The notes under the pieces are model-generated. The model was not told the origin of the DNA. It did no database searches and worked only from the letters and a program-made list of their open reading frames with translations. A program made the translations under genes and the position numbers. A DNA stretch of 56,855 nucleotides, filler included, from Basidiobolus meristosporus CBS 931.73 (taxonomy: Eukaryota > Fungi > Basidiobolomycota), in NCBI GenBank assembly GCA_002104905.1. It is 3 parts of 3 records of this genome, joined end to end, with 100 filler letters (N's around TTAATTAATTAA, not from the genome) between each part and the next. Parts side by side here need not be neighbours in the genome. Positions count along the whole stretch, not along the records: positions 24,415 to 44,055 come from MCFE01001028.1; 2 more parts are not named here. The stretch is one strand, 5' to 3'. This document shows, piece by piece, positions 24,415-44,155 of this stretch. Position 1 is the first letter of the stretch. Every line of letters begins with the position of its first letter.

Positions 24415-24877
24415 TAACCTCTATATGGTAGATTGGTACTTGGCATGGTTCTTCCAACTGAACCTCTAGGTTAGTAAATAACTACCAAGTGACTGGCAAT
24501 TGGTTGGACGGATGGAAAAATATTTACACGTTCTTAGATGTGGAGCCACTTTACTGCTCACTTGCTAACAGTCATTATCTGGATATACTTGTTTTCCATA
24601 CCTGTTGTAGTTACTGACAGTACTCATCGAAAGTCCGAAAAAGTACGTGCTGTGTGTGAAGTAGGACTTTCATGTCGGCCTCGCCCCATTTAAAGGGAAA
24701 ACAGAGAGTGTTTACAGCAATGGTACATTGTAGTATTCATACATGTTTAGTCAGAACGAGCAAGTGCAACTTTTGTATAACCACTCCACATTAGCCCTGT
24801 CAAGAATCCACTATATCAGTCGCATAGAGGAATATGAAAGCTCTGTTTTGCTGAAGGTTAATTCTATAGAATTTGAA

Positions 24878-25160
24878 ATGATCAGCCAACTGAAAATTCC
24901 ATCCACCCTTCTAATGACTACACTGGCCATGAGTGCTCAACTGCAGTGCAGAGTCTCTCAGTTCAGCAAATACCTTATGTACAGATACACATCTTGGGAG
25001 CTCAAGTAAAAAATGAAAGGCATGCCCAAGACCGCGAACCTCATACCACAACAGATGACTTACAGTATGCAGAAGTAGTATCGAGAAGTGATGCTGGCTA
25101 TTCTCCCAAGGATCATACGACAGGCCGCAAAAGTGACTCGGCGAAGAATTCCAGGAAACT
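24878..25160 (+). pseudogene. Peptide-precursor copy P1 (remnant)
   Basis: MISQLKIPSTLLMTTLAMSAQLQ matches the P8 signal peptide; the rest is decayed. Confidence 0.75.
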
Positions 25161-25274: not shown

Positions 25275-26799
25275 CTAGTTCAGAGACATAGTAGCAAGGG
25301 AAGCCAAACTGAAGTAAACAAGAGCTGAACTTGGATTGAAAAGGCCAGCCCCATCACTAGTAGTACATATGTGGGTTCCATTTGCAGGCGGAGCTTTGGA
25401 ATCAAGGCAGGTGCTTTGCTTTGGGTCATCATCTTCAGTTTCAGTCTTGATCATGGCTTCACATTTGTAGGCCACGTTTGCAAGTGGCGCCTTAGGGTCG
25501 ATACAAGTGCTTTTCTTTGTGACGTTGAGTTCCACAGCCTCGAAGAGGTTACGCATCCAGTGGAATGTATAGTTAGTCTTGAAGCCGGGGTAGATCATGT
25601 TGACAGTGTCTTGCAGAGCAGCATCAGCCATCACAACGGCATTTCTGAACCAATCGGCATCGCCGCTCTTGGTTTGGGTTCTGTCTACACGGTATACTGC
25701 CTTGTTGCTGATGAACTTGTATTGTGTGTCAGCCACAGACAGGTTGTACAGGTGCAGTACCTCCTCAATGGTAGGGTAGGTGATGTTTAGGTCAGTGAAA
25801 TCCGTCCTGTCCACTAAAATGTCTGCATCTTCGATAACATTCAGCAAATCGGGCAACTCATACCCAGAGAACGAAATAGTATTGAACAGCCTAGAGTCAT
25901 CATGATCTTCTGTCAATTGAGCGCCACTATCCTGCATCAAATGACTTAAGTAGCCAGGAGTGCAGTGCATATAGGATATTGCGTCGATAGCATCGATCAA
26001 ATAGACCCAAGCAACCTTTGGCGTGGTTTTGTCCGCCATCAACTGTACCTCGTTTTTGATACAGTCATAATTGTCGTGAATGCTTTGTGTGACATTGTTG
26101 GCAACCCTCTCCAGGTTGAAGAAGACTGAATAAACCTTGAGTAGGTCTGATTTCGTAAGTGGACTGGCGGTTACCTCCTCATAGATGTTGATGGTTTTGT
26201 TTCCATCAACATCTATGTCTGGGGTAAAGTAGGCATCAACATTCTCGTCAAAACTGTTGTTGGCAATGCATGGAGACGTAAAGTACTGTGGATAGGCAGA
26301 TACGATACGCTCAACTAGACCAAGCGTCTTGAATGAGCCATGAGTTAGAATACGCCTCTGTATCACCTTTATGAAATTAGCCAACCGTGGAAACTTACAT
26401 CTAGATAGCTAGCTTCTGTAGGGCCAACATTACCCACTCTATTCAGTGGGATTTCAAAGAACTTGTCGTATTGGCTGATACGTTGCGGCTGAGGAGTCCC
26501 GCGCTGGTAGAGGATATATTTATCAGTACTTGAAAGCTGCACGTACTTCCAGTTCATTCTGTATTCAATACTACGCTCGGTTTCGATATTAACTAAACGA
26601 ACAGAAATGATCAGTAAGCTCTCGTAGTGCTGCTACGAATGAAATGGCTCATACATGTGACTTTGTCTGGGAAATAGTCGGTGGCTGGGTCATAATTCTC
26701 TACTGTGAATGATGGATCTACGATGTTCGAGGTGAGTACCTCACAAGAGACAGCAGTAAGGCCGAGGAAAGTAAGAGTGCAAATGCTGAAGCAACGCAT
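25275..26799 (-). CDS. S1: CBA1-like periplasmic-binding-protein-fold surface protein, signal peptide + GPI-type tail, ~463 aa, intact
   Basis: Exons 26799-26655, 26592-26399, 26327-25275 join in frame (intron 2 acceptor is AAG). Motifs DYFPDKV, YILYQRGTP, FFEIPL, TSPC, SVFFNLE, NKAVYRVD, DWF..AVV.AD.AL.D. Confidence 0.85.
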
Positions 26800-27573
26800 G
26801 TGTATTGATGTTGGATGTTTCGTGATGCACACTTAAATAATATCTGGCCATTGTACATTCGAACACATTGGCTGATCATCCAAAAATATGGACAAATAGG
26901 GCACTAACTATTGTGATCAAATTACTTACACAAGTAGCAAGATATATCATCTGGCCATTTACACATTGGAACACATTAGTTGGTCCACCGGAAACATCCC
27001 ACTAATTAGGATAGATTCCGTTGATGATGTGATGAAACAAGTTAGATACGTTTCTTTACGAGCCAATTGGGGCTACAAATCTTGCAAGCACCATTCGTGG
27101 ATGTCAAATAACCATCTATGGAAAATCAATTCACTGCACCGAGGAACAACTTCCAAAAAGCTGACAGTTAATGAGATAGATTGGATGAATATTATAGCCA
27201 TTGCCTTGGGTGAAAACGATTTGTAGTATAGCTTACAGCCTTCATCTAGATAAACGTCTACTTGCATATCTGAACTTATATATACACTAGCTGTGGCCCT
27301 CTGCGACTACTGGGGCTTTTGCTGATATTTATAACGACTCTGGCTCTTTATACCTCAGGAAAGACTACGTACAAGCCTACCCGTTAGACTTATTTTACTC
27401 CCCTCAACTCAAATCATAGTATACCTCAGCTTAGAAGAAAAGCTCTGATAATATGCCTTCCGGTATGACATATGTGCCATCTCATTAATCCTTCCCCGCT
27501 AACTAAGCATCAAGAGGTGCTCCCATCCCAACATAAAGCCTCTTGATAGATACGGCTGAACCCTAGCAAGTAC

Positions 27574-27820
27574 ATAATCCGAGAACTAGCAATCCCATTC
27601 ACACTCTCAATGGTAACCATGACAATGGGTGCAAAATTACATTTCACCATTGGTCCACCTCCTCTCAGCAACATTGCTATTAGGTTGACATTCACCGAAT
27701 CACTCAGACCAGCACAAACGCTATGGATAGGTTACTAAGTGAAATCATGATTACTAGGCTCGAGGACGTTTTGGGAGATACGGCTGGTACTACAACTGGG
27801 ACTACCTGTTTGATAAATAA
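27574..27820 (+). pseudogene. Peptide-precursor copy P2 (start lost, internal deletion)
   Basis: IIRELAIPFTL... followed by RGRFGRYGWYYNWDY and the conserved GATAAATAAATGAA 3' motif. Confidence 0.75.
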
Positions 27821-28032
27821 ATGAATCAGTAATTTCATATCGCTGTGATACTTGTCCCCAACACGCACACACTAATCTAGCTCAGAACTGTGCATAATGA
27901 CAAGACTTGAATCCAGATCGTGAAATCAATGAGATCGCCATAATGTTACGATATAAAATTATTTATGAGATTGCCTTCGATTATAACCGGTTACCTACAG
28001 TAATAGTTGCTATATTGGTGATGTGTAATGCA

Positions 28033-29468
28033 CTAGCCCAAATAGGCAGCTACAACAGAAGCCAACCCGAAGTAAACAAGAGCTGAGCTGGGACTGAAAA
28101 GGCTAACCCCATCGTTGGTATCAGTCTTGATCTTGGCGTCACACTTGTATGCCACATTTGCAAGTGACGCCTTAGGATCGATACAAGTGCCTTGCTGCGT
28201 ACCGTTCAGCTTCTCACCATCGAAAAGGTTACGCATCCAGTGGAAAGTGTAGTTACTCTTGAAGCCAGGGTGGACCATATTCACTGTGTCCTGGAGTGCA
28301 GCATCAGCCATCACAACAGCATTGAAGAACCAATCGGCATCGCCGCTCTTGGTTTGGGTTCTGTCTACGCGGTATACTGCCTTGTTGCTGATGAACTTGT
28401 ATTGTGTGTCAGCCACAGACAGGTTGTACAGGTGCAGTACCTCATCAACCTTAGGATAGGTAATGTTCAGGTGAATGAAACTTGACATATCTACTAAGAT
28501 GTCTGCATCCTTGATGACTTCTAGGACTTCATTCAATGGATTCCCAAAAGCTGAAATACCATTGTTTTCCTCAAACTCTATTATTGATTGTGCGCCACTA
28601 TCCCGCATCAGATAGTGTAGGTAGTTTGGAGTGTAGAGAACGTATGATATTCTTGAGGTTAAATAATCGATTATATAGACCCAAGCAATCTTTGGCGTTG
28701 TCTTAGCCGTCATCGACTGTACCTCGCTCTTGACGCAGTTATAGTTGCCCTCAATGTCCTGTGTGATCTTGTTGGCGGTCTTCTCCAGGTTAAAGAAAAC
28801 CGAATAAGTCTTGAGCAAATCCGACCTCGTGAGTGGCCTGGACATCGTCAACTCATAGATGTTGATGGTATCGTTCCTATCAGCATTTACACCTGGGGCA
28901 AAGTAGGCTCCAACATTTGACCCTGAATTGTTGTTGGCAATACACGGGGATGTAAAGTATTGTGGCTCGACAGATACGATACGTTCACCTAGGCCAAGCA
29001 TCTAGAATAAGCATGTCAGAAATTGCTACCAAATCGATGTTATCAAATGAGCCATCAATGGTAACTCACATCTAAAAAGCTAGCCGCGGTCGAATTTGCA
29101 ATGCTCACTCGATTCAGCGGGATTTCGAAGAACTTGTCATACTTGCTGACACGTTCCGGCTGAGGAGTCCCACGCTGGTAGAGGATGTACCTATTAGTCG
29201 GTGAAAGCTGCACATACTTCCAATTCATTCTGTATTCGATACGGCTCTCTGTTTCATTATTGACTAAGCGAACGGAATGCATTAGTAAGCCATCTTAGTG
29301 TGAATACAAATGAAGTGGCTCGTACATGTGACTTTGTCTGGGAAATAGTCGGTGGCTGGGTCGTAATTCTCCACCCTGAAGGATGGATCTACGATGTTCG
29401 AGGTGAGTACCTCAAGAGACAGCAGTAAGGCCAAGAAAAGTAAGAGTGCAAATGCTGAAGCAACGCAT
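28033..29468 (-). pseudogene. S2: CBA1-like copy with a 2-bp deletion in exon 1 (otherwise 435 aa)
   Basis: Exons 29468-29326 (143 nt instead of 145), 29263-29070, 29001-28033. TCTTGTGAG>TCTTGAG at ~29414 creates a stop. Could be an assembly error. Confidence 0.8.
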
Positions 29469-30454
29469 GTGTATTGATGTTGGATGTTTTGTGCTGCACA
29501 TTTAAATAATAACTGGCCATTGTACAATCGAATACCTTGGCTGCTTACCCAGAGCCATCGCGCAAAGTAGGATAGATCACACCAACTATTGTGCTCAAGT
29601 TAGTTACACAAGATCCTTTACCACGAGGCATGGAACGCTTTGTATGTAACAATGTTGCTTCCATTCCTTATCAGTGATGTTGTAGCAATTACATCACTAT
29701 CACTGGTGAATACCAAACAATCTCAATATGGTAAATTGGTGCTTGGCATCGCTTTTCCAAATAATGGGTAATTGGTTGGTCAGATTAAACAATATTCCAG
29801 TGTATAGTCACACACAAAATATCCTGTGGAGACAGTATATTTGACCACCATTTTTGGTTCTACTCTACTGTTCACTTGCCGACAGTTACCATTTCAAGTT
29901 CTTTATATCCAATTGTACTGATAGTATGCGTCGGCAATCTGATAATGTACAGGCGATGAGTGAGCAAATTCAAATCATTCATCATACCCTAAATGTAGAG
30001 GAAACTGAGTGCACCTACTGTGATGTTGTATTTATAAAAATTCAGGAAGAGAACTGTAGTTTGTGTAAATCCCCTTTTCATTTCACATGGCTGCTGAAAA
30101 GAATGCAGTCATATCAACTGAATTCAACTGGGTGCCAAGAACTTCCCTATATTCGGCTTCGTGATATATAAGCTGTGTATAACAAATATCTGAATCCCTA
30201 GTCTGATCATATGCTCATCAAAAAGACAGGATCGTGTGATAAAACGCTGGTATATTGAATAGAAAACAACGAATTCATCGGCATACCGTCACTCGTCTTT
30301 ACACCAGAGAATTGCCTGATGCAGATTAGCTCGCTAGGGATCATATACCGTTTTCATTAAACTGACTAGGCTTACCAAATCATATGATATATTCTAGTGC
30401 TATTACAAAAGTTTGTTCTGCTTTAAGCTAATGCCTCAGAACTCGAACTGGAAT

Positions 30455-30945
30455 ATGATCAGCCAACTAGCAAGCCCATTCCCTCTTCTACTAGCCACAC
30501 TGGTCATGGGCGCTCAGCTGCAGTCTACCGCTGGCCCAGCCTCCTTCAGAAAGGTGGCCCTTCAGCGAGTCCCTTAGCCCAGCACAGAATCGTAATGATG
30601 GATATACCATCCGGGAGTTCAAGTCAAACAAGAAGGAAGACGCATCAAGGATCATGAGCCTTATTCTCCAGCAGATGACGAACAGCATGCAAAAGAAGGA
30701 GTATACCCCACTCTCGAACATGCTTGACATAGATGAGGCGAAGACTGGTACCGCCTCCGATCCGAAGGATCCCACTCTAGGCAGCAAAGGTGGAGATGAA
30801 GGTGAGGGTATTTCTGAGATGAACCCCGAGGAAGCTGAGCTTTGGGGCAATTATGGTCGCTGGAGACGTGAATACTGGGAGATATGGTGGGTGTAGTCGG
30901 TGGGGAGGCAGAAGATATGGCGGGTGCTATGACTGGGACTGCTGA
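30455..30945 (+). pseudogene. Peptide-precursor copy P3 (two frameshifting deletions)
   Basis: MISQLASPFPLLLATLVMGAQLQ...PEEAELWGNYGRWRREYW.../RYGGCSRWGGRRYGGCYDWDC*. Confidence 0.85.
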
Positions 30946-31119
30946 TTTCATAAATAAATGAACCAGTCATTTCACTACATACTTGTGATGTTCCTTTCAT
31001 CATGCTGGCAGTGCGGCATCCATACATCCACACATATCTATCTCGGATCAAAGAACAAAGACGATTCTCGAAATGAAATCATGAAATGTTGTTAGATTAC
31101 CTTTGACATATAGGTTAGA

Positions 31120-31390
31120 TACAGTAATAGCCTGTACACAGGCTGAGTTTGTATTGCAAAGCCAAGACCATCACTGGTATTTATGCATCCAGTGGAAAAT
31201 AGAATCACCTCGACGCCGCAGCTCCCACAACTAATCTTACTGTTATTGTGAGTACGCCACGCTATTTGAATGTCAGGCTTAGTACTGGCGGTAATTGTCT
31301 GGTGTATTACTTCTCCATATATTCGTCGCAGCAACAATACAATCCAAAGCTTTTTCGCAGGTCATGATCTATCAGATGCGTGAACAACAC
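31120..31390 (-). pseudogene. S3: collapsed CBA1-like remnant
   Basis: FHWM and TSDGLGF fragments, next to a 3' UTR resembling those of S1 and S4. Confidence 0.55.
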
Positions 31391-31528
31391 TGAGATATGA
31401 ATATTCAATCCATCAAACCCCGTCAATCTTTGCTACAGACCCAATTATATTCCAAATATCTCTACTTGATTAAGGGTAGCTCATTGCCTTTGTCATGAGG
31501 GCCAATGCCGTGGAACCTGACCTGCGAT

Positions 31529-31850
31529 AAGATCAGCCAACTAGCAATCCCACTCAACCTCCTTGGCCACGGGTATTTCACTGCACTCCATAACTGACCA
31601 AGACACTCGAAAAGATATAGACACCGAACCTGTATCTACCGATTCATTTAGTCCTACACAAAACCCCGAGGACGGATATATCCTCCGGGAGTCCCAGTTA
31701 AGCAAGATATGTCGAGGATCATGAACCTTACTTACCATCAAATGACTCAAAGCATGCAGAAGGAATTTATAAATAGGAGAACTGATGATATCTCTGCTTC
31801 CAAGTATCCAACCATATACCACAAAAGCGACTCGAAGAATCCCAAGTAAA
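31529..31850 (+). pseudogene. Peptide-precursor copy P4 (remnant)
   Basis: AAG replaces ATG; ISQLAIPLNLL and SRIMNL...QMTQSMQK fragments. Confidence 0.7.
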
Positions 31851-32058
31851 CTGAATCATGAAGTTATTTGTTACTTTCTAAATAATTCGACATTATGGTT
31901 GATCGTTTGATGGATACAGTGAGGTTAGATACAGTAGCAGGCACTATGGTGAATACATAAATTACACTATTTCAGACAGGTAGCTGCAAGAGAAGCCAGC
32001 CCGAAGTAAGCAACAGTCGAACATAGATTAAAAAACCAATCCCATTGTTAGTAATTAT

Positions 32059-33402
32059 CTAGATCCTGGCATCACATTTGTAGGCCACGTTTGCAAGTGG
32101 TGCCTTGGGATCAATACAAGTGCTGTGCTTCGGACCATCGAGCTTCTCGTCGTCGAAAAGGCTACGCATCCAGTGGAAAGTGTAGTTACTCTTGAAGTCA
32201 TGGTGAGCCATATTCACTGTGTCTTGCAGAGCAGCATCAGCCATCACAACTGCATTGAAGTACCAATCGACATCACCGCCCTTGGTTTGTATTCTATCTA
32301 CACGGTATACTGCCTTGTTGCTGATGAACTTATATTGTGTGTCAGCCACGGACAGGTTGTATAGTTGCAATACCTCATCAACCGTAGGGTAGGTAATGTT
32401 CTGGTGAATGAAATCTGATATTTCCACTACAATGTCTGCGTCCTTGATGACATCTAGGAACTCATTCAAATTTTTATATCCGTGAGCCAAAGCGCCGTTA
32501 TCTTCGTCAAACTCTATTAATTGTGCGCCACTATCCTGCATCAGAGAGCCCAAGTAGCTCGTTGTGGAGTAAACGTAGTACACATCCGAGCCGTGATATT
32601 TGTAATAATCGGATCTATAGATCCAAGCAATCTTTGGCATTGTCTTGGCCTTCATCGACCCTACCTCGCTCTTAACGCAGTTATAGTTGTCCTCAATCTT
32701 CCGTGTGATCTTATTGGCGGTCTTCTCCAGGTTGAAGAAGACAGAATAAATTTTGATTAAATCTGATCTCACAAGTGGACTGTACCACGGATCCTCAGTA
32801 ATGTGGATGGTTTTGTTCCCAACGATATATCTGTCTGGGGAAAAAAGTGCATCAACGTTTACCCCTGAATTACTATTGGCAATGCACGGGGATGTGAGGT
32901 ATTGTGGTTCGGCAGACACGATACGCTCACCTAGGCCTAGCATCTATGATAACCATGTGTCAGGAAATGCTTCTAAATCATTCGTATTAGTAAGAACTCA
33001 CATCAAGATAGCTAACCGCAGTCGAGTTCACAACTTCCACTCGATTCAGCGGGATTTCAAAGAACTCGTCGTATTGGCTGATTCGCTCTGGTTGAGGAGT
33101 CCCACGCTGGTAGAGGATATACTTGTGAATACTTGAAAGCTGCACATACTTCCAGTTCATTCTGTATTCGATACGGCTCTTTGTTGCATTGTTAACTAAA
33201 TGGACGGAATGCATTAGTAGGTTATCTTAGTGTGAATACAAATGACGTGACTTGTACATGTGACTTTGTCTGGGAAATAGTCGGTGGCTGGGTCGTAATT
33301 CTCCACCCTGAAGGATGGATCTACGATGTTCGAGGTGAGTACCTCACAAGAGACAGCAGTAAGGCCGAGGAAAGTAAGAGTGCAAATGCTGAAGCAACGC
33401 AT
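32059..33402 (-). CDS. S4: CBA1-like copy, ~407 aa, stop before the GPI signal
   Basis: Exons 33402-33258, 33195-33002, 32943-32059 in frame. AAG>TAG at 32059-32061; a decayed GPI-tail sequence follows. Confidence 0.78.
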
Positions 33403-33934
33403 GTGTATTGATGTTGGATGCTTCGTGCTGCACACTTAAATAATAACTGCAATCTGATCATTGTACATTCGAACACATTGGCTGATCATCCAGAACTATC
33501 GCAGAAATTAGGATAGATTGCACCAACTGTTGCGCCCCAAATAGTTACACGAGATCATTTATCGCGAGGAAAAGAACACTCATATGTAACACTGTTGCTT
33601 CCACTCCTTGTCAGTGATGATGTAATAGCCACATCGCTATCACTCGTGGATACTAAACAACCTCTATATGGTAGATTGGCGCTTGGCATTTCTGTTCCAA
33701 ATGGAAGACGGGCGGACAGAACAAGATTCCGGTGGATAGCCACATAGAGAATAACATATGGGGACTGCATATTCAGCCATCGTTTTTGGGCCTACTTCAC
33801 TGCTCTCTTGCTGACAGTTGTCATCTCGAAACTTGAAATACCTCGGCTAAGACTTCACTATATTCAACTTCATGATATCTCAGCCATATAGAGTGTCAGA
33901 CCTGGCATTGACGGTAAAAATACTTAGACTTGTA

Positions 33935-33970
33935 AGGTAGAAGGTATAGCGGGCTTCATAAATAAATGAA
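33935..33970 (+). pseudogene. Peptide-precursor trace P5 (3' end only)
   Basis: GGTAGAAGGTATAGCGGG...CATAAATAAATGAACC matches the 3' ends of P3 and P8. Confidence 0.5.
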
Positions 33971-34159
33971 CCAACAATTATTTCATACCTATACATCCAC
34001 ATATATCTATGCCGGACCAGTGAGCAAAGACAATGCTTGAGGAGAAGTTCGAAATTGTAGGGATGAACTACAATGATATTACATTCAACTATTTATTAGA
34101 TAACTTGAGACTAAAATAGCTTGATGCTGTGATAGACAGTATAGTGAAGACGCGTAATA

Positions 34160-34608
34160 CCATAGCCCAGATAGATGGCTACAATAGAAGCTGAAAACGA
34201 GTAAACAAGAGCCGACCTTGAGTTGAAAAAGCCAACTCCATCATTAGTATCACACTTATAAACCAAGAAGCTGAAGTGGTACCATATTGCATTGAGAAGG
34301 CCGAGGAGTGCCGCGCTGATAAAAGATTCAAGTCTAATAGAAAAGCTGTAGATACTTCCAGCTCTTTTGGTAATAAATACGATTCTCCATTGGGGCGTCA
34401 ACTAAATGAATGGAATGGATCAGTAAGCTCACTTAGCGTTGCTACGAATTAAGTGACTCATACATGTGACTTTGTCTGGGAAATTGTTGGAGGCTGAGTC
34501 GTAAAGCTCTATCTTGAATGCTGGATCTACAATGTTGGAGGTGAGTTTCTTACAAGAAACGGTAGTAAGGCCGAGGAAAGGCAGAATGTAGGTGCATAAG
34601 CACCGTAT
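34160..34608 (-). pseudogene. S5: CBA1-like remnant with a large internal deletion
   Basis: ATA for ATG, recognisable exon 1 (FPDKVT) and intron 1, part of exon 2 fused to YKCDTNDGVGFFNSRSALVY. Confidence 0.85.
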
Positions 34609-34940
34609 GTGTACTGATGTTGTATGTAGTATGCTGAACACTTACATAACATCATAGCCTTCAAACACATTAGCTGATCCACAAGAAACGTCGGACAATT
34701 TAGACATCAACTGCTGTGATCAAATGAGCTACATGAGTTTCTTTAACTATAGGCTAAGATCATATGCAAGTGACACTGTTGTTTGTTTTCCTTATCAGTG
34801 GTGTTACGATCTCCAAATCAATACTACTGTTGGATAACAATCTCTATATGGTAGATCCGTACTTGACATTACTCTCTCAAATGAAAGAAATTTTGCTGGT
34901 CAGATAGAATGATATTATAGTGTGTAGTCGGATGCACCGC

Positions 34941-35290
34941 TCAAGTCAAGCAAGAAGGAAGACGCGTAACGAACCATGAGCCTTATTTACCACCAAACGA
35001 CAAGCAGCATGTACCAGAAGGAGTATTCTCCACTCTCAAACATACTTGACATTTAAAAGACAAGAGCTCATTCAGTCCTCGATACAGGGATACCACCATC
35101 GACGACAAAAGTTGAGCGGAGGATAAGGGCAATTTAGAGAGAATTTTAAGGAAACATTACTAAGTGGGGAAGATACGGTCGCTGGAGACATGGTTACTAG
35201 GTTTGAGGACGCCACGGGATATATACTAACTATGCTCGGTGGGAAGGTCGAAGGGTATGGCAGGTTCAAAGACTGCTAGTTTATAAGTGA
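34941..35290 (+). pseudogene. Peptide-precursor copy P6 (3' half)
   Basis: KSSKKEDA, KEYSPLSNILD and KWGRYGRWRHGY fragments with stops. Confidence 0.75.
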
Positions 35291-35516
35291 ACAAGCCAGT
35301 AATTCGGTATAATCACTGTGATACTCTTTCGAACATGCCTAGCAATACACTCACACAACACCAACTTAGAGTTGTGAATAATGACAAGACTTGAAGCCAG
35401 ATCATGAAATCAATGAGATCGACATAATGTTATGACTTACAATTATTTATTAGACTGCCTTCGATTATAATAGGTTACTTACAGTAATGGTAGACGTATT
35501 GATGATGTGTAATGCA

Positions 35517-36952
35517 CTAGCCCAAATAGGCAGCTACAACAGAAGCCAACCCGAAGTAAACAAGAGCTGAGCTTGGACTGAAAATAGCTGACCCCATCGT
35601 TAGTATCAGTCTTGATCTTGGCATCACACTTGTAGGCTACATTCACTAGTGGTGCCTTGGGATCAGTACAAGTGCTTTGCTGCGTGCCATTAAGCTTTTC
35701 ATCCATCGAAGAGGTTACGCATCCAGTGGAAAGTTGTAGTTACTCTTGAAGCCAGGGTGGACCATATTCACTGTGTCTTGCAGTGCAGCATCAGCCATCA
35801 CAACGGCATTGAAGAACCAATCGGCATCGCCACTCTTGGTTTGGGTTCTGTCTACGCGGTATACTGCCTTGTTGCTGATGAACTTGTATTGTGTGTCAGC
35901 CACAGACAAGTTGTACAGTTGCAGTACCTCATCAACGGTAGGGTAGGTGATATTTTGGTGAATGAAACTTGACATCTCCACTATGATGTCTGCATCCTTG
36001 ATGACTTCAAGGAACTCATTTAATGAATATCCGAATGCTGTAATACTATAATTTTCCTCGAACTCCATCATTAGTTGAGCGCCACTATCCTTCGTCAAAG
36101 AGTATAAGTAGTTCGGAGTGTAGTAGACGTAGGATATGTTCGAGGAGAAGGTGTAGGCATCGGTTATGTAGACCCAAGCAATCTTTGGCGTTGTCTTAGC
36201 CGTCATCGATTTTACCTCGCTCTTGACGCAGTTGTAGTTGCCTTCAATGTCCTGTGTGATCTTGTTGGCAGTCTTTTCCAGGTTGAAGAAGACCGAATAA
36301 ACTTTGAGTAGATCTGATCTCATAACTGGAGTGTACCACGTATACTCAACAAGGTTGATGGTTTTGTTTCCATCGGCATATATGGATGGGGAAAAAAGTG
36401 CATCAACATTTGCACTCGAACTGTTGTTGGCAATGCACGGGGATGTAAAGGATTGTGGCTCGACAGATGCGATACGTTCACCTAGGCCTAGCATCTAGGA
36501 TAACCATGTGTCAGACAATGCTTCCAAATCATTCATGCCAGTAGCAACTTACATCTAGATAGCTAGCCCAGTCGAATTTGCAATGCTCACTCGATTCAGC
36601 GGGATTTCGAAGAACTTGTCATACTTGCTGACACGTTCCGGCTGAGGAGTCCCGCGCTGGTAGAGGATGTACCTATTAGTAGATGAAAGCTGCACATACT
36701 TCCAATTCATTCTGTATTCGATACGACTCTCAGTTGCATTGTTAACTAAACGGATGGAATGCATTAATACGCTATCTCAGTGTGAATACAAACGAAGTGA
36801 CTCGTACACGTGACTTTGTCTGGGAAATAGTCGGTGGCTGGGTCGTAATTCTCCACCCTGAAGGATGGATCTACGATGTTCGAGGTGAGTACCTCACAGG
36901 AGACAGCAGTAAGGCCGAGGAAAGTAAGAGTGTAAAAGCTAAAGCAACGCAT
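35517..36952 (-). pseudogene. S6: CBA1-like copy with several single-base indels
   Basis: Exon 2 is 193 nt (1-bp deletion at ~36568); extra bases at ~35735, ~35700 and ~35585 relative to S2/S7. Confidence 0.8.
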
Positions 36953-37053
36953 GTGTATTGATGTTGGATGTTTCGTGCTGCACACTTAAATAATAACTGG
37001 CCATCGTACATTCGAACATATTGGCTGATCATCCAGAACCATGGCACAAAATA

Positions 37054-37430
37054 GGATAGATCACACCCACTATTATGCTCAAATTAGTTACACGAGTTCA
37101 CATACTTCGAGGCATCGAACATTCGTATGTAACAGTGTTGCTTCCACTCCTTGTCAGTGGTGTTGCAACAGCTACATAACTAACACCGGTGGACACCAAA
37201 CAATCTCAATATGGTAGATTGGCGCTTAGCATAGATATATGGATAGATCACGCCCACTATTATGCTCAAATTAGTTACGCGACATCATTTACCACGAGGG
37301 AAAGGACACTCGTATGTAACACTGTTGCTTCTATTCCTTGTCAGCAGTGTTGCAACAGCCGCGACGCTATCACTAGTGGATGCTAAACAATCTCAATATG
37401 GTAAATTGGCGCTTGGCATAGCTCTTCCAA
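37054..37430. repeat. 187-bp tandem duplication in the S6 upstream region
   Basis: GGATAGATCAC... recurs at 37054 and 37241. Confidence 0.85.
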
Positions 37431-37954
37431 ATTACAAATGATAGGTAATTGGCTGGTCCCACGGAACAAAATACCAGTGTATAGTCGCATGCAGAACAAT
37501 AGATGGAGACAGCGTATTCGGTCACCATTTTTGGCTCTACTCTACTGTTCGCTTAGTGACAACTACAATTTTGAAAGCTATACACCTCACAAACATCGGC
37601 TACGTGCACTGACTGAGCATGTTTTGTCAGGAAGAGAACTGTAGTTTGTATATGACCACTTTTCATTTCACCTTAGCAAGCGTACCTACCAAATTCCATC
37701 TGGTGCGGAAATATTTCGGCCGAGACTTCACTATATTTATTTTCATGATATATTAGCCGTATAGTGCAAATCTTGGAGTCTTCAGTCCGATCATGTGTTC
37801 ATCATAAGTGCTGGTGCATTAAACAGAAAACAACCAATTCATCAGACTACCGTTACTGACTTTCGCTCAAGAGAGTTGTCTAGCTCATAGTGGCTTATTG
37901 GAGCTTATTTCTTTGTTCTGCTAAGAGCTGCTGTCTCAGAATCTGACCTGGAAT

Positions 37955-38465
37955 ATGATCGGACAACTGGCAATCCCATTCTCCTTCATAATAGCCACAC
38001 TGGCCATTGGTGCTCAACTGCAGTTTACTACTGACTCAGCTGCTCCTGGGAACGTGGCCAGATGATCAACATCCACCGAATTACTTAGTCCAGCAAAGAA
38101 TTCTGGGAACGGATACACCGCCCAGGAGTTCAAGTCATAAAAGAAGGAAGATGCGTAAAGGATCATGAACCTTATATCCCAGCGGACGACGAAGAGTATG
38201 CCCAACAAAGAGTAACTCTAGCATACTTGATATGGATAAGATGGGGCTAATCCGGTCACTGATTCTCAGGAGCCGGCCATGGACCTCAATAGTGGAGATG
38301 AGGCGAGGCTGGCTTAGTGAGGAATGCCGAGGAAGGGTGACTAAGTGGGGAAGATACGGATGCTAGATTCGAGGACGCTTTGGGGGATACGACAATAATA
38401 GTCGGTGAGGAGGTAAAAGATATGACGGGCGCTACAACTGGGACGACCAGTTCGATAAATAAATG
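37955..38465 (+). pseudogene. Peptide-precursor copy P7 (multiple stops)
   Basis: MIGQLAIPFSFIIATLAIGAQLQ...VAR*, later KWGRY and RGRFGGY fragments. Confidence 0.85.
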
Positions 38466-38642
38466 AAATTATACGCCCGTACAAATTTAGCTCAGAGCTG
38501 TGAATAATGACAAGACTTGAATCCAGATCGTGAAATCAATGAGATCGTCGTAATGTTATGACATACAATTATTTATTAAACTGCCTTCGATTATGAAAAG
38601 TTACTCACAGTAATAGTTGATGTATTGGTGGTGTGTAATACA

Positions 38643-40071
38643 CTAGCCCAAATAGGCAGCTATAACGGAAGCCAACCCGAAGTAAACAAGAGCTGAGTTG
38701 GGATCGAAAAAGCTGACCCCATCGTTGGTATCAGTCTTGATCTTGGCATCACACTTGTAGGCTACATTTGCGAGTGGCGCCTTGGGATCAGCACAAGTGC
38801 TTTGCTGCGTGCCATTAAGCTTTTCACCATCGAAGAGGTTACGCATCCAGTGGAAAGTGTAGTTACTCTTGAAGCCAGGGTGGACCATATTCACTGTGTC
38901 TTGCAGAGCAGCATCAGCCATCGCAACAGCATTGAAGAACCAATCGGCATCGCCGCTCTTGGTTTGGGTTCTGTCTACGCGGTATACTGCCTTGTTGCTG
39001 ATGAACTTGTATTGTGTGTCAGCCACAGACAAGTTGTACAGTTGCAGTACCTCATCAACGGTAGGGTAGGTGATATTTTGGTGAATGAAACTTGACATAT
39101 CCACTACAATATCTGCATCCTTGATGACTTCAAGGAACTCATTCAATGGATGTCCCGTAGCTGTAGGAGTACTACTTTCCTCAAACTCTACCAGTAATTG
39201 TGCGCCACTATCCTGCGTCAGATAGTGTAGGTGATTCGGAGTGTAGTGAACGTATGCTCTCTCCGAGGGTGAATCATCGAATACATAAACCCAGGCAATC
39301 TTTGGGGTAGTCTTGGCCGTCATCGATTGTACCTCACTCTTGACGCAGTTATAGTTGTCCTCAATCTCTTGTGCGACCTTGCTGGCAGTCTTCTCCAAGT
39401 TGAAGAAGACCGAATAAACTTCGAGTAGATCTGATCTCATAACTGGAGTGTACCACGTGTACTCAACAATGTTGATGGTTTTGTTTCCATCAGCATATAT
39501 GGATGGGGAAAAAAGTGCATCAACATTTGCACTCGAACTGTTGTTGGCAATGCACGGGGACGTGAAGGATTGTGGCTCGACAGATGCGATACGCTCACTT
39601 AAGCCTAGCATCTAGAATAAACCATGTGTCAGACAATGCTTCCAAATCATTCGTGTCATTAGTAACTTACATCTAGATAGCTAGCCGCAGTCGAGTTCGC
39701 AATGTCCACTCGATTCAGCGGGATTTCAAAGAACTTGTCGTACTTGCTGACACGTTCCGGCTGAGGAGTCCCACGCTGGTAGAGGATGTACGTATCAGTC
39801 TGTGAAAGCTGCACATACTTCCAGTTCATTCTGTAGTCAATACTACGCTTGGTGTCATTGTTAACTAAACGGATGGAATGCATTAATACGCTATCTTATG
39901 GTAAATACAAATGGCGTGGCTCGTACATGTGACTTTGTCTGGGAAATAGTCGGTGGCTGGGTCGTAATTCTCCACCCTGAAGGATGGATCTACGATGTTG
40001 GAGGTGAGTACCTCACAGGAGACAGCAGTAAGGCCGAGGAAGGTAAGAGTGTAGATGCTGAAGCAACGCAT
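38643..40071 (-). CDS. S7: CBA1-like surface protein, signal peptide + GPI-type tail, 435 aa, intact
   Basis: Exons 40071-39927, 39864-39671, 39611-38643 with canonical GT-AG introns. C-terminus TNDGVSFFDPNSALVYFGLASVIAAYLG*. Confidence 0.88.
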
Positions 40072-40550: not shown

Positions 40551-41073
40551 TTACAAATGATAGGTAATTGGTTGATCCCATAGAACAAAATACCAGTGTA
40601 TAGTCGCATACAGGACAACGTGCACCTACTGCAACGTTTTATGTATGTTGGCATACTTTGTCAAGAAGGGTGCTGCGGTTTGTATATGTCCCGTTTTTAT
40701 ATCATCTCGACAGTCGTACCTACTGAATTCCTTCTAGTGTGCAAACACTTCGGCCAAGACTTCACTATATTCAACTTTATGATATATCAGCTGTATAGAG
40801 CAAATCTCTGAGTCTCCAGTCCGATCATGTGTTCACCATAATGACAGAATGGTGGGATAAAATGCTGATGCACTAAATAGAAAACAGTCAATTCATCAGA
40901 CTACTGTCACTCTTCTTTACACCAGAGATTTCCCTGATTCGGAGTAGCTCGCTAGAGCTCATATACTGTTTTCATTAAACTAGCTAGGACAACCAAACCA
41001 CATGATGTATTCTGGTGTCAATATAAAATCTTTGGCCTGCTGAAGGCTAAGGCTACAGAACCTGGCCTGCAGT

Positions 41074-41592
41074 ATGATCAGACAATTAGCAATCCCATTC
41101 ACCCTCCTAATAGCCACACTGGCCATGGGTGCTCAACTGCAGTCCATCGCTGTTCCAACTGCTCCTGGGAACGTGGCCACCAACTCTGTATCCACCGAAT
41201 CACTTGGTCCAGCACAGAATCCTGGGGACGGGTATACCGTCCGGGAGTATAAGTCAAACAAGAAGGAAGACGCATCAAGGATCATGAACCTTATTCTTCA
41301 GCAGATGACAAACAGCATGCAAAAGAAGGAGTATCCTCCACTCTCGAACATGCTCGAAATGGATGACGCGCGAACTAGAGCTGCCTCAGAACCAAAGAAA
41401 CACACCGTTGAGACCAGGAGTGGAGGTGAGGGTGAGGATATCTCTGAGAAGAATCCCGAGGAAGCTGAGCTGTAGGGAAGATTTGCTCGCTCAAGACGTG
41501 GATACTGGGGCCGAGGACGCTTCGGGAGATATGGTGGGTATGGTTGGTGGGGAGGTAGAAGGTACAGCGGATGCTACGACTGGGACTGTTGA
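41074..41592 (+). CDS. P8: secreted precursor (signal peptide, acidic pro-region, G/R/W/Y-rich cationic C-terminal peptide); one in-frame TAG at 41473-41475
   Basis: 133 aa to the TAG, then in frame GRFARSRRGYWGRGRFGRYGGYGWWGGRRYSGCYDWDC*. P3 has TGG at the aligned codon, giving 172 aa if Trp is restored. Confidence 0.7.
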
Positions 41593-41942
41593 TTTGATAA
41601 ATAAATAGTTGCACAGGTATTGGCAGTGTGCGGAATCGTCCATTCCCAATATAGATCTGGAGATGCAATCACGCACGGACTGTTGACATCAGCATGTCTT
41701 TTATATTTGGGGGAGTAAATCGCGAAGACTGGTACTGCCTTTTACTATACTGCCTTTCACCACCCAATGTGCAACCCAAGTATATAGATAGATTCGACGT
41801 TATCAACATGAAACACGATATGTCAATGGTATGAAAATATATATAGATTTATGAGAAAATCAAATTTCACATGAAATAAACTGTATATACTGTGCAAAGA
41901 AAAGTATTTGTCGGAAATATATGCGATTGCTTCACCGTCAAG

Positions 41943-43194: not shown

Positions 43195-44055
43195 TTATAG
43201 ATAGCGGCCATTCTTTTTGACTGATGCCAGGTAGCATGCGATATTGATCAAGGTGACTATGCTACTCCCGGCGGTAATCTTGGTAAACCAAAGCCTCCAT
43301 CTTCCCGAGGCGAGCGCTGAAACAGTGAAGTACAAATGGCTGAAATTGGCCAGACTGAAGGCCAGCAGGATCGCCTTCTGCGCAGTGATGTCTTTGATCC
43401 TGAAGGATAAGAGCGACAGCAAAGCCCAGGCAGCGTGTACCCCGCCCAGGAATTTGACCGTGTCAATAGCATACGGGGGAACCCCACCCTTTCCACCAGA
43501 CACTACGGCATTCATAAGGAGAGCCTTTCGTGGGCGGGAAAGGTAATAAACAGCCAAGCCATGCCACAACAGGTTGACAGCAAAGGCGGTGTAGTTCGTA
43601 TGGGTCAGATCTAGTAATGCTTGGAAGACGTGGCGCAAAAATCGTTTGGTGACTGATGGATTTTCCGCTGGAGGAATCCTGGATTATGGGCGAGTCCCTG
43701 TTTGTGCTCGGTCGATGATTCGGGTTGGGATTTGGTTGGATGGTGGTTGTTTCTGTGTGATTCCTGTGTTAGGTGGATTGTTGTTTCTACGTGAATCCTG
43801 GATAGCTTTGTTCCACATGTCCTCAAATGCCTCCTGCTCCTTGGTGGTTGCTTCGTTCTTCCTTGCGTCCCTCCCTTCCGAAGCTGGCTTTTTCTCGGGG
43901 ATTTTCTGCCATTTTCACCCACTCCTTGTCGGCCTTCGGCGACGGCTCCTTCTTGTTTTGAGAAGGGGTGCCCTGTTCTTTATCGAGATGATCTTCATTT
44001 TCGCAGGAAGCCGCCGGATCCTGCGGGATGGCGGTCTCCTCGACCTCGGAAGGTG
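43195..44055 (-). CDS. Partial gene: low-complexity N-terminal part and C-terminal ~4-TM domain, function unknown; 5' end off the contig
   Basis: ORF 43195..43638 has about four hydrophobic segments and no ATG. Upstream charged and Pro/Gln-rich reading frames are broken by apparent frameshifts near the contig end. Confidence 0.55.
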
Positions 44056-44155
44056 NNNNNNNNNNNNNNNNNNNNNNNNNNNNNNNNNNNNNNNNNNNNT
44101 TAATTAATTAANNNNNNNNNNNNNNNNNNNNNNNNNNNNNNNNNNNNNNNNNNNN
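44056..44155. other. Artificial contig linker
   Basis: 44 N + TTAATTAATTAA + 44 N. Confidence 0.99.

Follow-up and report, generated by a model that had tools for sequence, protein, structure and literature searches.

The locus at positions 41074–41592 on the plus strand of the window (the whole stretch of DNA analyzed, 56,855 nt with filler) almost certainly carries a copy of a single-exon gene that is interrupted by a nonsense codon but undamaged elsewhere, making it either a null allele or a pseudogene of very recent origin. By sequence comparison, it is a member by descent of a peptide-gene family that is confined to Basidiobolus in the searched data and matches no described family, but it is a broken member, in which the homology is present and the tail frame is closed by a TAG. 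The proteins of this family are in all probability secreted and precursor-like. The best explanation as a whole, combining a broken copy, a secreted precursor, and a cationic antimicrobial-type peptide, is put forward as a tentative one.

Basidiobolus meristosporus CBS 931.73 is the source of the contig, 19,641 bp long, in which the locus lies. Its plus-strand ORF runs from an ATG at 41074 to an in-frame TAG at 41473–41475 and encodes 133 aa. Beyond the TAG, the same frame stays open for 38 codons (41476–41589) and ends at a TGA (41590–41592), the stop of the full-length frame. The sequence-only reading had proposed a tail behind the in-frame TAG, and all of its elements were found in place. 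The residues after the TAG comprise 11 Gly, nine Arg, five Tyr, four Trp, two Phe, two Ser, two Asp, two Cys, and one Ala, with a net charge of +7 and a C-x4-C pair (CYDWDC) at the extreme C-terminus. These counts agree with the earlier ones, and the fifth Trp counted there is obtained only when the stop position is taken as Trp, as in the intact twin P0019. The acidic stretch described ahead of the TAG is also present (41422–41472); the last 25 residues carry a net charge of −5, and the stretch ends in the junction motif (N/D)(P/S)EE(A/T)(E/Q)L. Likewise, the N-terminus has the properties of the proposed signal peptide, in that a hydrophobic core (residues 5–17) follows the basic start and A-x-G stands before position 20. 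AlphaFold2 (AF2) predicts a helix over residues 6–19. The putative signal peptide spans residues 1–19 (41074–41130), with A-x-G at −3/−1, and the same layout is seen in the paralogues P0002, P0005, and P0009. It is followed by an anionic pro-part (residues 20–133; 41131–41472), which has a net charge of −5 here and −7 in P0019 (pI 4.7) and contains a conserved core at residues 50–92 (41221–41349) delimited by the family alignments and AF2.

The flanking sequences fit the full-length frame. A TATA-like motif (41022–41028, plus strand), 46 bp upstream of the ATG, may act as the promoter, and the region upstream of the gene is shared with that of a paralogous copy (30284–30455) in blastn and DNA alignment. 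An AATAAA (41600–41605, plus strand) stands just after the TGA, not after the TAG, and is invariant in the three longest copies. The frame one base later (41363–41608, plus strand) is also open over the tail and reads as an acidic string rich in Gly, Asp, Thr, and Val.

The coding nature of the tail is established by an intact twin. P0019 (K493DRAFT_306629, ORX88445.1) is a 172-aa protein annotated as hypothetical on a 61,688-bp sister contig and is the second member of the 90%-identity cluster of the 133-aa window product. The window protein and P0019 were compared as two pieces, not joined across the stop. Over the first piece, 131 of 133 residues are identical, the differences being at positions 99 and 126, where the window copy has Ala and Lys, respectively; over the second, residues 135–172 of P0019 match the window tail at all 38 positions. 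P0019 carries Trp where the window copy has the TAG, as do P0002, P0003, P0004, P0005, and P0013, and P0009 has Leu. A second intact paralogue, P0002 (K493DRAFT_306618, 172 aa), shows 72% identity to residues 1–133 of the window product and matches the window tail at 31 of 38 positions (82%). The 172 codons are colinear with P0019 and P0002, and no intron is required. Between the window copies starting at 41074 and 30455, dN/dS is 0.31 over 104 codons, and the last 22 tail codons have a dN of 0.08 against a dS of 0.75. The identity with P0019 and P0002, together with the dN/dS values, indicates that the tail is coding in this frame and has been under purifying selection. The restored 172-aa reading of the sequence-only analysis is thereby upheld, since the intact twin encodes the same layout with Trp at the stop position, and homologues open through the tail were found in P0019, P0002, and P0009. 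It was also correct that the TAG conceals the tail from ORF calls, as the 133-aa ORF ends there and the tail beyond it is real coding sequence, and that another copy retains the CYDWDC end (30877–30942). The label "unrecognised" holds for the window copy and fails for the family, a twin with the tail having already been annotated as a hypothetical protein. At least 38 open codons after a stop are commonplace in this contig (12% of the stop-to-stop gaps); a chance open frame was ruled out for the tail by the P0019 identity and dN/dS. An origin of the Gly-rich tail from a DNA microsatellite was ruled out as well, the tandem-repeat scan giving only one 9-bp × 2 repeat.

Because the TAG replaces the Trp of the twin, the window copy can make only a 133-aa product composed of the signal peptide and the pro-part, and its tail is untranslated unless the TAG is read through. 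The locus is almost certainly not the working gene but a null or decaying copy. A copy unbroken in the living fungus, in which the TAG is an assembly error or is partially read through to yield the 172-aa protein, is very unlikely. The TAG is indeed the sole lesion across the 172 codons, which makes this the best-preserved copy in its array, and neither the promoter-like region nor the AATAAA behind the TGA is damaged. However, the window contig differs from the twin at two further codons and is thus a distinct sequence, not a miscopy, the neighboring peptide-gene copies are all plainly decaying, and GGA AGA, the sequence that follows the stop, is not known to us as a context favoring read-through. 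It is also barely conceivable that the TAG is the end of a short spliced-out intron with the acceptor ...CTGTAG. Donor-like GTGAGG/GTGGAG sequences occur at 41420, 41426, and 41432, 44–56 nt upstream of the AG at 41474–41475, but the candidate introns of 44, 50, and 56 nt are all 2 modulo 3 in length, the shifted frame stops after about 28 codons, and their removal would take away the conserved acidic junction. Moreover, the DNA frame read without splicing is colinear with P0019, P0002, P0005, and P0009 at the TAG point. Removal of the TAG as an intron was ruled out by the wrong length class and the colinear intact paralogues.

The window contig may be the other haplotype of the 61.7-kb sister contig or a recent segmental duplicate. 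The sister-contig proteins named here are P0002, P0004, P0007, P0008, and P0019, and counterparts of several window genes are 99–100% identical at the protein level. P0007 is 99% identical to window 32062–33402, and P0008, assigned to the sister contig by the database, is identical to the first window copy (ORF 25275–26384) over the stretch compared by eye. The sister contig also carries the peptide genes P0002 and P0004, which are without an equally close counterpart in the window. It seems that the assembly holds two or three diverged versions of the array, as haplotypes or segmental duplicates.

The 41074 locus forms the end of a tandem array with about six units. Each unit measures ~3.3 kb and consists of a peptide-gene copy on the plus strand arranged tail-to-tail with a three-exon gene on the minus strand. 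The other peptide-gene copies of the array, all on the plus strand, are decayed or fragmentary. The copy at 30455–30942 has 77% nucleotide identity, carries 11-nt and 17-nt deletions, and keeps its CYDWDC end in a shifted frame; the JGI model P0003 (118 aa) has been forced onto this decayed copy. The copy at 37955–38444 (~70% identity) has several stops and deletions. Fragments are found at 24831–25082 (blastn) and, by sequence comparison, at 27574–27799 (the signal-peptide part and the tail end only), 31560–31765, and 34943–35254 (with stops). The breakage of five of the six array copies and of several copies elsewhere (P0003, P0004, and P0010) shows weak selection on single copies.

The gene interleaved with the peptide genes encodes a secreted protein of ~407 aa and was located by tblastn with P0007 in six copies, one of them a fragment, at 25449–40071 on the minus strand (25449–26799, 28129–29468, 32062–33402, 34292–34608, 35614–36952, and 38739–40071). 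Its UniRef name is "Periplasmic binding protein-like II"; it has no match in PDB, Pfam, or NCBIfam, and its AF2 model has a pLDDT of 31. Copies with at least 90% identity occur on three different contigs (P0007, P0017, and P0018). The C-terminus of the long copies is hydrophobic and resembles a GPI signal. Copies of this gene retain long open exons, whereas the peptide genes between them are in decay. All ORFs of at least 90 aa in the contig belong to the binding-protein-like gene, overlap with such a gene or a peptide copy, or lie in the unassigned end region 43195–44107. Just past the array end, a 147-aa ORF (43195–43638, minus strand) with several hydrophobic segments and no Pfam or NCBIfam match likely encodes a membrane protein. 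A Pfam scan of five ORF products from the 19.6-kb contig gave no match (0/5), and no tyrosinase, peroxidase, other modifying or tailoring enzyme, or protease gene was found in it.

The alignments define a common layout for the family, in which a signal peptide, an anionic pro-part, and a conserved junction precede a cationic Gly/Arg/Tyr/Trp tail. The tripartite layout claimed for the single locus is thus a family trait, as it recurs in paralogues as divergent as 38–49% identity (P0009, P0013, and P0005). Residues G53, S61, D66, A67, and I70 are invariant in the pro-part core, which also holds the sole confidently helical internal stretch (residues 66–82, AF2). The junction motif is followed by (W/L)GRYG, giving a stretch of the EEAELWGRYG type, which is among the best conserved. 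The tails are 18–48 residues long, are built on GR(Y/F)G-like units, and have a net charge of +4 to +7; across members, they contain ~30% aromatic residues, 28–46% Gly, and 17–23% Arg. Long-form tails end in a Cys-x3/4-Cys pair around Trp (CYDWDC in P0019 and P0002, CDWGC in P0009). The pro-part/tail charges of the intact members are −7/+7, −12/+7, −7/+7, and −9/+4, so that two members are exactly balanced and the other two have an excess of negative charge in the pro-part. The predicted free tail of P0019 (residues 134–172) has a mass of 4774 Da (~4.8 kDa) and a pI of 10.5. The AF2 model has a pLDDT of 50 and shows helices only at 6–19, 66–82, and 128–136, and the ESM Atlas model (pLDDT 0.48) is mostly coil. 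Because both models are low-confidence and mainly coil, the family protein is predicted to be mostly disordered.

At the junction, which consists of E-L followed by W-G, the family conserves neither a dibasic pair nor any other recognized processing signal, and the tails of P0009 and P0005 have no dibasic pairs at all. The release of a free 39-aa peptide, put forward in the earlier reading, is therefore an assumption. Since a conserved dibasic site is missing, Kex2-type processing is unlikely. Secreted aspartic proteases favor hydrophobic pairs such as Leu-Trp.

Word-based searches over 5.8 billion proteins, a HMMER profile search over 1.84 billion cluster representatives, and a scan of JGI metagenome contigs recovered no relatives outside Basidiobolus. 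B. meristosporus has about ten annotated members, the relatives being P0019, P0002, P0003, P0004, P0005, P0009, P0010, and P0013, and the locus tags of the family include K493DRAFT_306629, K493DRAFT_306618, and K493DRAFT_321345. The window product matches P0002 with an E-value of 1e-52 in the word search, and the profile matches P0009, P0010, P0012, and P0013 have E-values of 4e-21 to 1e-6. The sole relative outside B. meristosporus is P0012 of Basidiobolus ranarum (K7432_013667, 115 aa, on a 6,167-bp contig), whose model comprises a signal peptide and a pro-part and ends before the junction and tail. Searches of Pfam, NCBIfam, and PDB sequences with the protein, its pieces, and the family profile gave no match, and the proposal of a new family accordingly stands as far as homology is concerned. 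Two long metagenomic profile matches, P0011 and P0014, are PEGA/PKD-type repeat proteins and were taken as repeat-driven false positives. In the ESM Atlas, the sole match was an oomycete "glycine-rich protein" cluster with a chance-level score of 0.81, and the tail alone gave none. In the literature, six locus tags (five family members and the neighbor gene) were mentioned in no paper found, and nothing relevant was found on Basidiobolus together with antimicrobial peptides or the secretome. The annotated members P0003, P0004, and P0010 are themselves truncated or frameshifted. After WGRYGGYGG, the public model P0010 enters an alternative-type frame like that of window 41363–41608, and it probably hides a frameshift or is mis-built.

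From the architecture of the family, the following course can be envisaged. The protein would be secreted, and the acidic pro-part would keep the sticky, basic, aromatic tail neutral and soluble during export. A non-Kex2 protease may then cut at or near the conserved Leu-Trp junction and free the tail, whose two terminal cysteines could close a small disulfide loop. The freed cationic, aromatic-rich peptide would act on competitors in the gut, dung, and litter. The chances that the tail is in fact freed as a peptide appear evenly balanced. An antimicrobial role, suggested by composition and architecture, is the leading guess for the tail and is possible rather than probable. It was ranked first because Arg/Trp-rich and Gly/Tyr-rich cationic peptides are established antimicrobials and because nematode clusters share the tandem, rapid-turnover genomics. 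In these clusters, the NLP and caenacin genes encode Gly/Tyr-rich secreted antimicrobial peptides (PMC2453101).

The composition of the tail would be equally compatible with an adhesive or cross-linkable wall protein. The main rival to the antimicrobial reading, itself rather unlikely, is an adhesive or matrix peptide whose tail sticks via cation-pi and aromatic contacts, maybe after tyrosine oxidation or cross-linking, with the acidic pro-part as a built-in coacervation partner; such a peptide might serve in the beak glue of capilliconidia or in the wall of spores or zygospores. The tail, with ~30% aromatic residues, is Gly- and Arg-rich and disordered, and the matched opposite charges of pro-part and tail would suit coacervation. 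Furthermore, the capilliconidia of Basidiobolaceae bear an apical beak coated with adhesive material (PMC13370150), and Mfp-3 offers the example of a ~6-kDa cationic, aromatic, Trp-containing interfacial adhesive (PMC12721214). However, homology to any adhesive protein is lacking, no gene for a tyrosinase, peroxidase, or other modifying enzyme lies in the 19.6-kb contig, nothing links the genes to spores, and decay of most copies would be unusual for genes encoding a structural glue. A stronger form of the adhesive reading, in which the pro-part and tail of one chain make up a self-contained coacervate that serves as beak glue of the capilliconidia or as a cross-linked matrix of the spore wall, is decidedly improbable. 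If true, the family would represent the fungal equivalent of marine wet adhesives and would provide the first molecular handle on the attachment of Basidiobolus spores to arthropod carriers.

It is also conceivable, though doubtful, that the family consists of unprocessed, secreted, disordered proteins, in which the tail stays in place as an anchor to the negative cell wall or a target surface, or in which the pro-part helix is the active element and the tail modulates it. The junction without a recognizable cleavage site and the location of the most invariant residues in the pro-part core agree with this, as does the existence of pro-part-only products: the B. ranarum P0012 model has a pro-part without a tail, which suggests that the pro-part may have its own role, and the window copy, also limited to the pro-part, continues to be listed with a gene product of 133 aa. 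On the other hand, conservation between P0019 and P0002 is higher in the tail than in the remainder of the protein, dN/dS is lowest in the tail, and the junction motif ranks with the best conserved stretches, as a recognition site would. The gene content of the 19.6-kb contig, which includes no tailoring enzyme or protease, does not favor any one of the antimicrobial, adhesive, and unprocessed readings. The preferred reading remains a secreted precursor with a cationic antimicrobial-type tail.

Basidiobolus inhabits the guts of amphibians and reptiles and occasionally infects humans. To our knowledge, almost no secreted peptides have been characterized in early-diverging fungi. A genus-specific multi-copy family would offer an easily synthesized candidate of ~4.8 kDa, either as a new antimicrobial scaffold or as a spore adhesive. 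The locus also holds a lesson for annotation, as one stop hides a real tail coding sequence, and an entry for the intact twin, named hypothetical protein, already exists in GenBank.

The general theme, a prepro layout in which an anionic propiece accompanies a cationic peptide rich in Gly and aromatic residues, is known, and the Basidiobolus family would extend it to a lineage without a characterized example. The NLP-29 cluster and the caenacins (CNC) of Caenorhabditis elegans resemble the family in being small, secreted, disordered proteins dominated by Gly, Tyr, Arg, and Trp and encoded by tandem, fast-turnover genes (PMC2453101). No nematode protein appeared among the matches of the profile search (1.84 billion representatives) or the word search, so that homology to NLP/CNC was not detected. 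The nematode precursors, as far as we know, have neither a long conserved anionic pro-part nor a terminal Cys pair. Mfp-3 resembles the P0019 tail (4.77 kDa, pI 10.5) in being cationic, ~5–6 kDa, disordered, and rich in Gly, Arg, Tyr, and Trp (PMC12721214). It differs from the Basidiobolus family in its animal origin, and no homology between the two was found. Mfp-3 depends on DOPA formed by tyrosine hydroxylation, and we know of no acidic pro-domain or terminal disulfide loop in this protein.

The fungal defensin-like peptide plectasin and the mammalian alpha-defensins share with the family a signal peptide, an acidic propiece, and a cationic C-terminal peptide, the charges of the latter two roughly canceling. 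Their mature peptides, released by cleavage at defined sites that are often dibasic, have Cys-stabilized folds with at least six Cys, whereas the Basidiobolus tail has only two Cys, no fold in AF2, and no conserved dibasic site. Membership in the CS-alpha/beta plectasin type was ruled out, with two Cys rather than six, no tail fold (AF2), and no PDB sequence match. A Kex2-processed repeat or alpha-factor-like precursor was also rejected, there being no basic pair at the junction and no repeated units. As for fungal RiPP precursors of the dikaritin/ustiloxin type, neither Kex2-flanked core repeats nor DUF3328/tyrosinase-type neighbors were found within the 19.6 kb. The "Rana box" of ranid frog peptides (brevinins) is similar in form only, combining a cationic peptide with a short C-terminal disulfide loop. 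In the frog peptides, an amphipathic helix is combined with a loop that contains Lys, whereas the Basidiobolus tail has a Gly-rich body and an acidic/aromatic loop (Y-D-W-D or D-W-G) closed by a putative disulfide.
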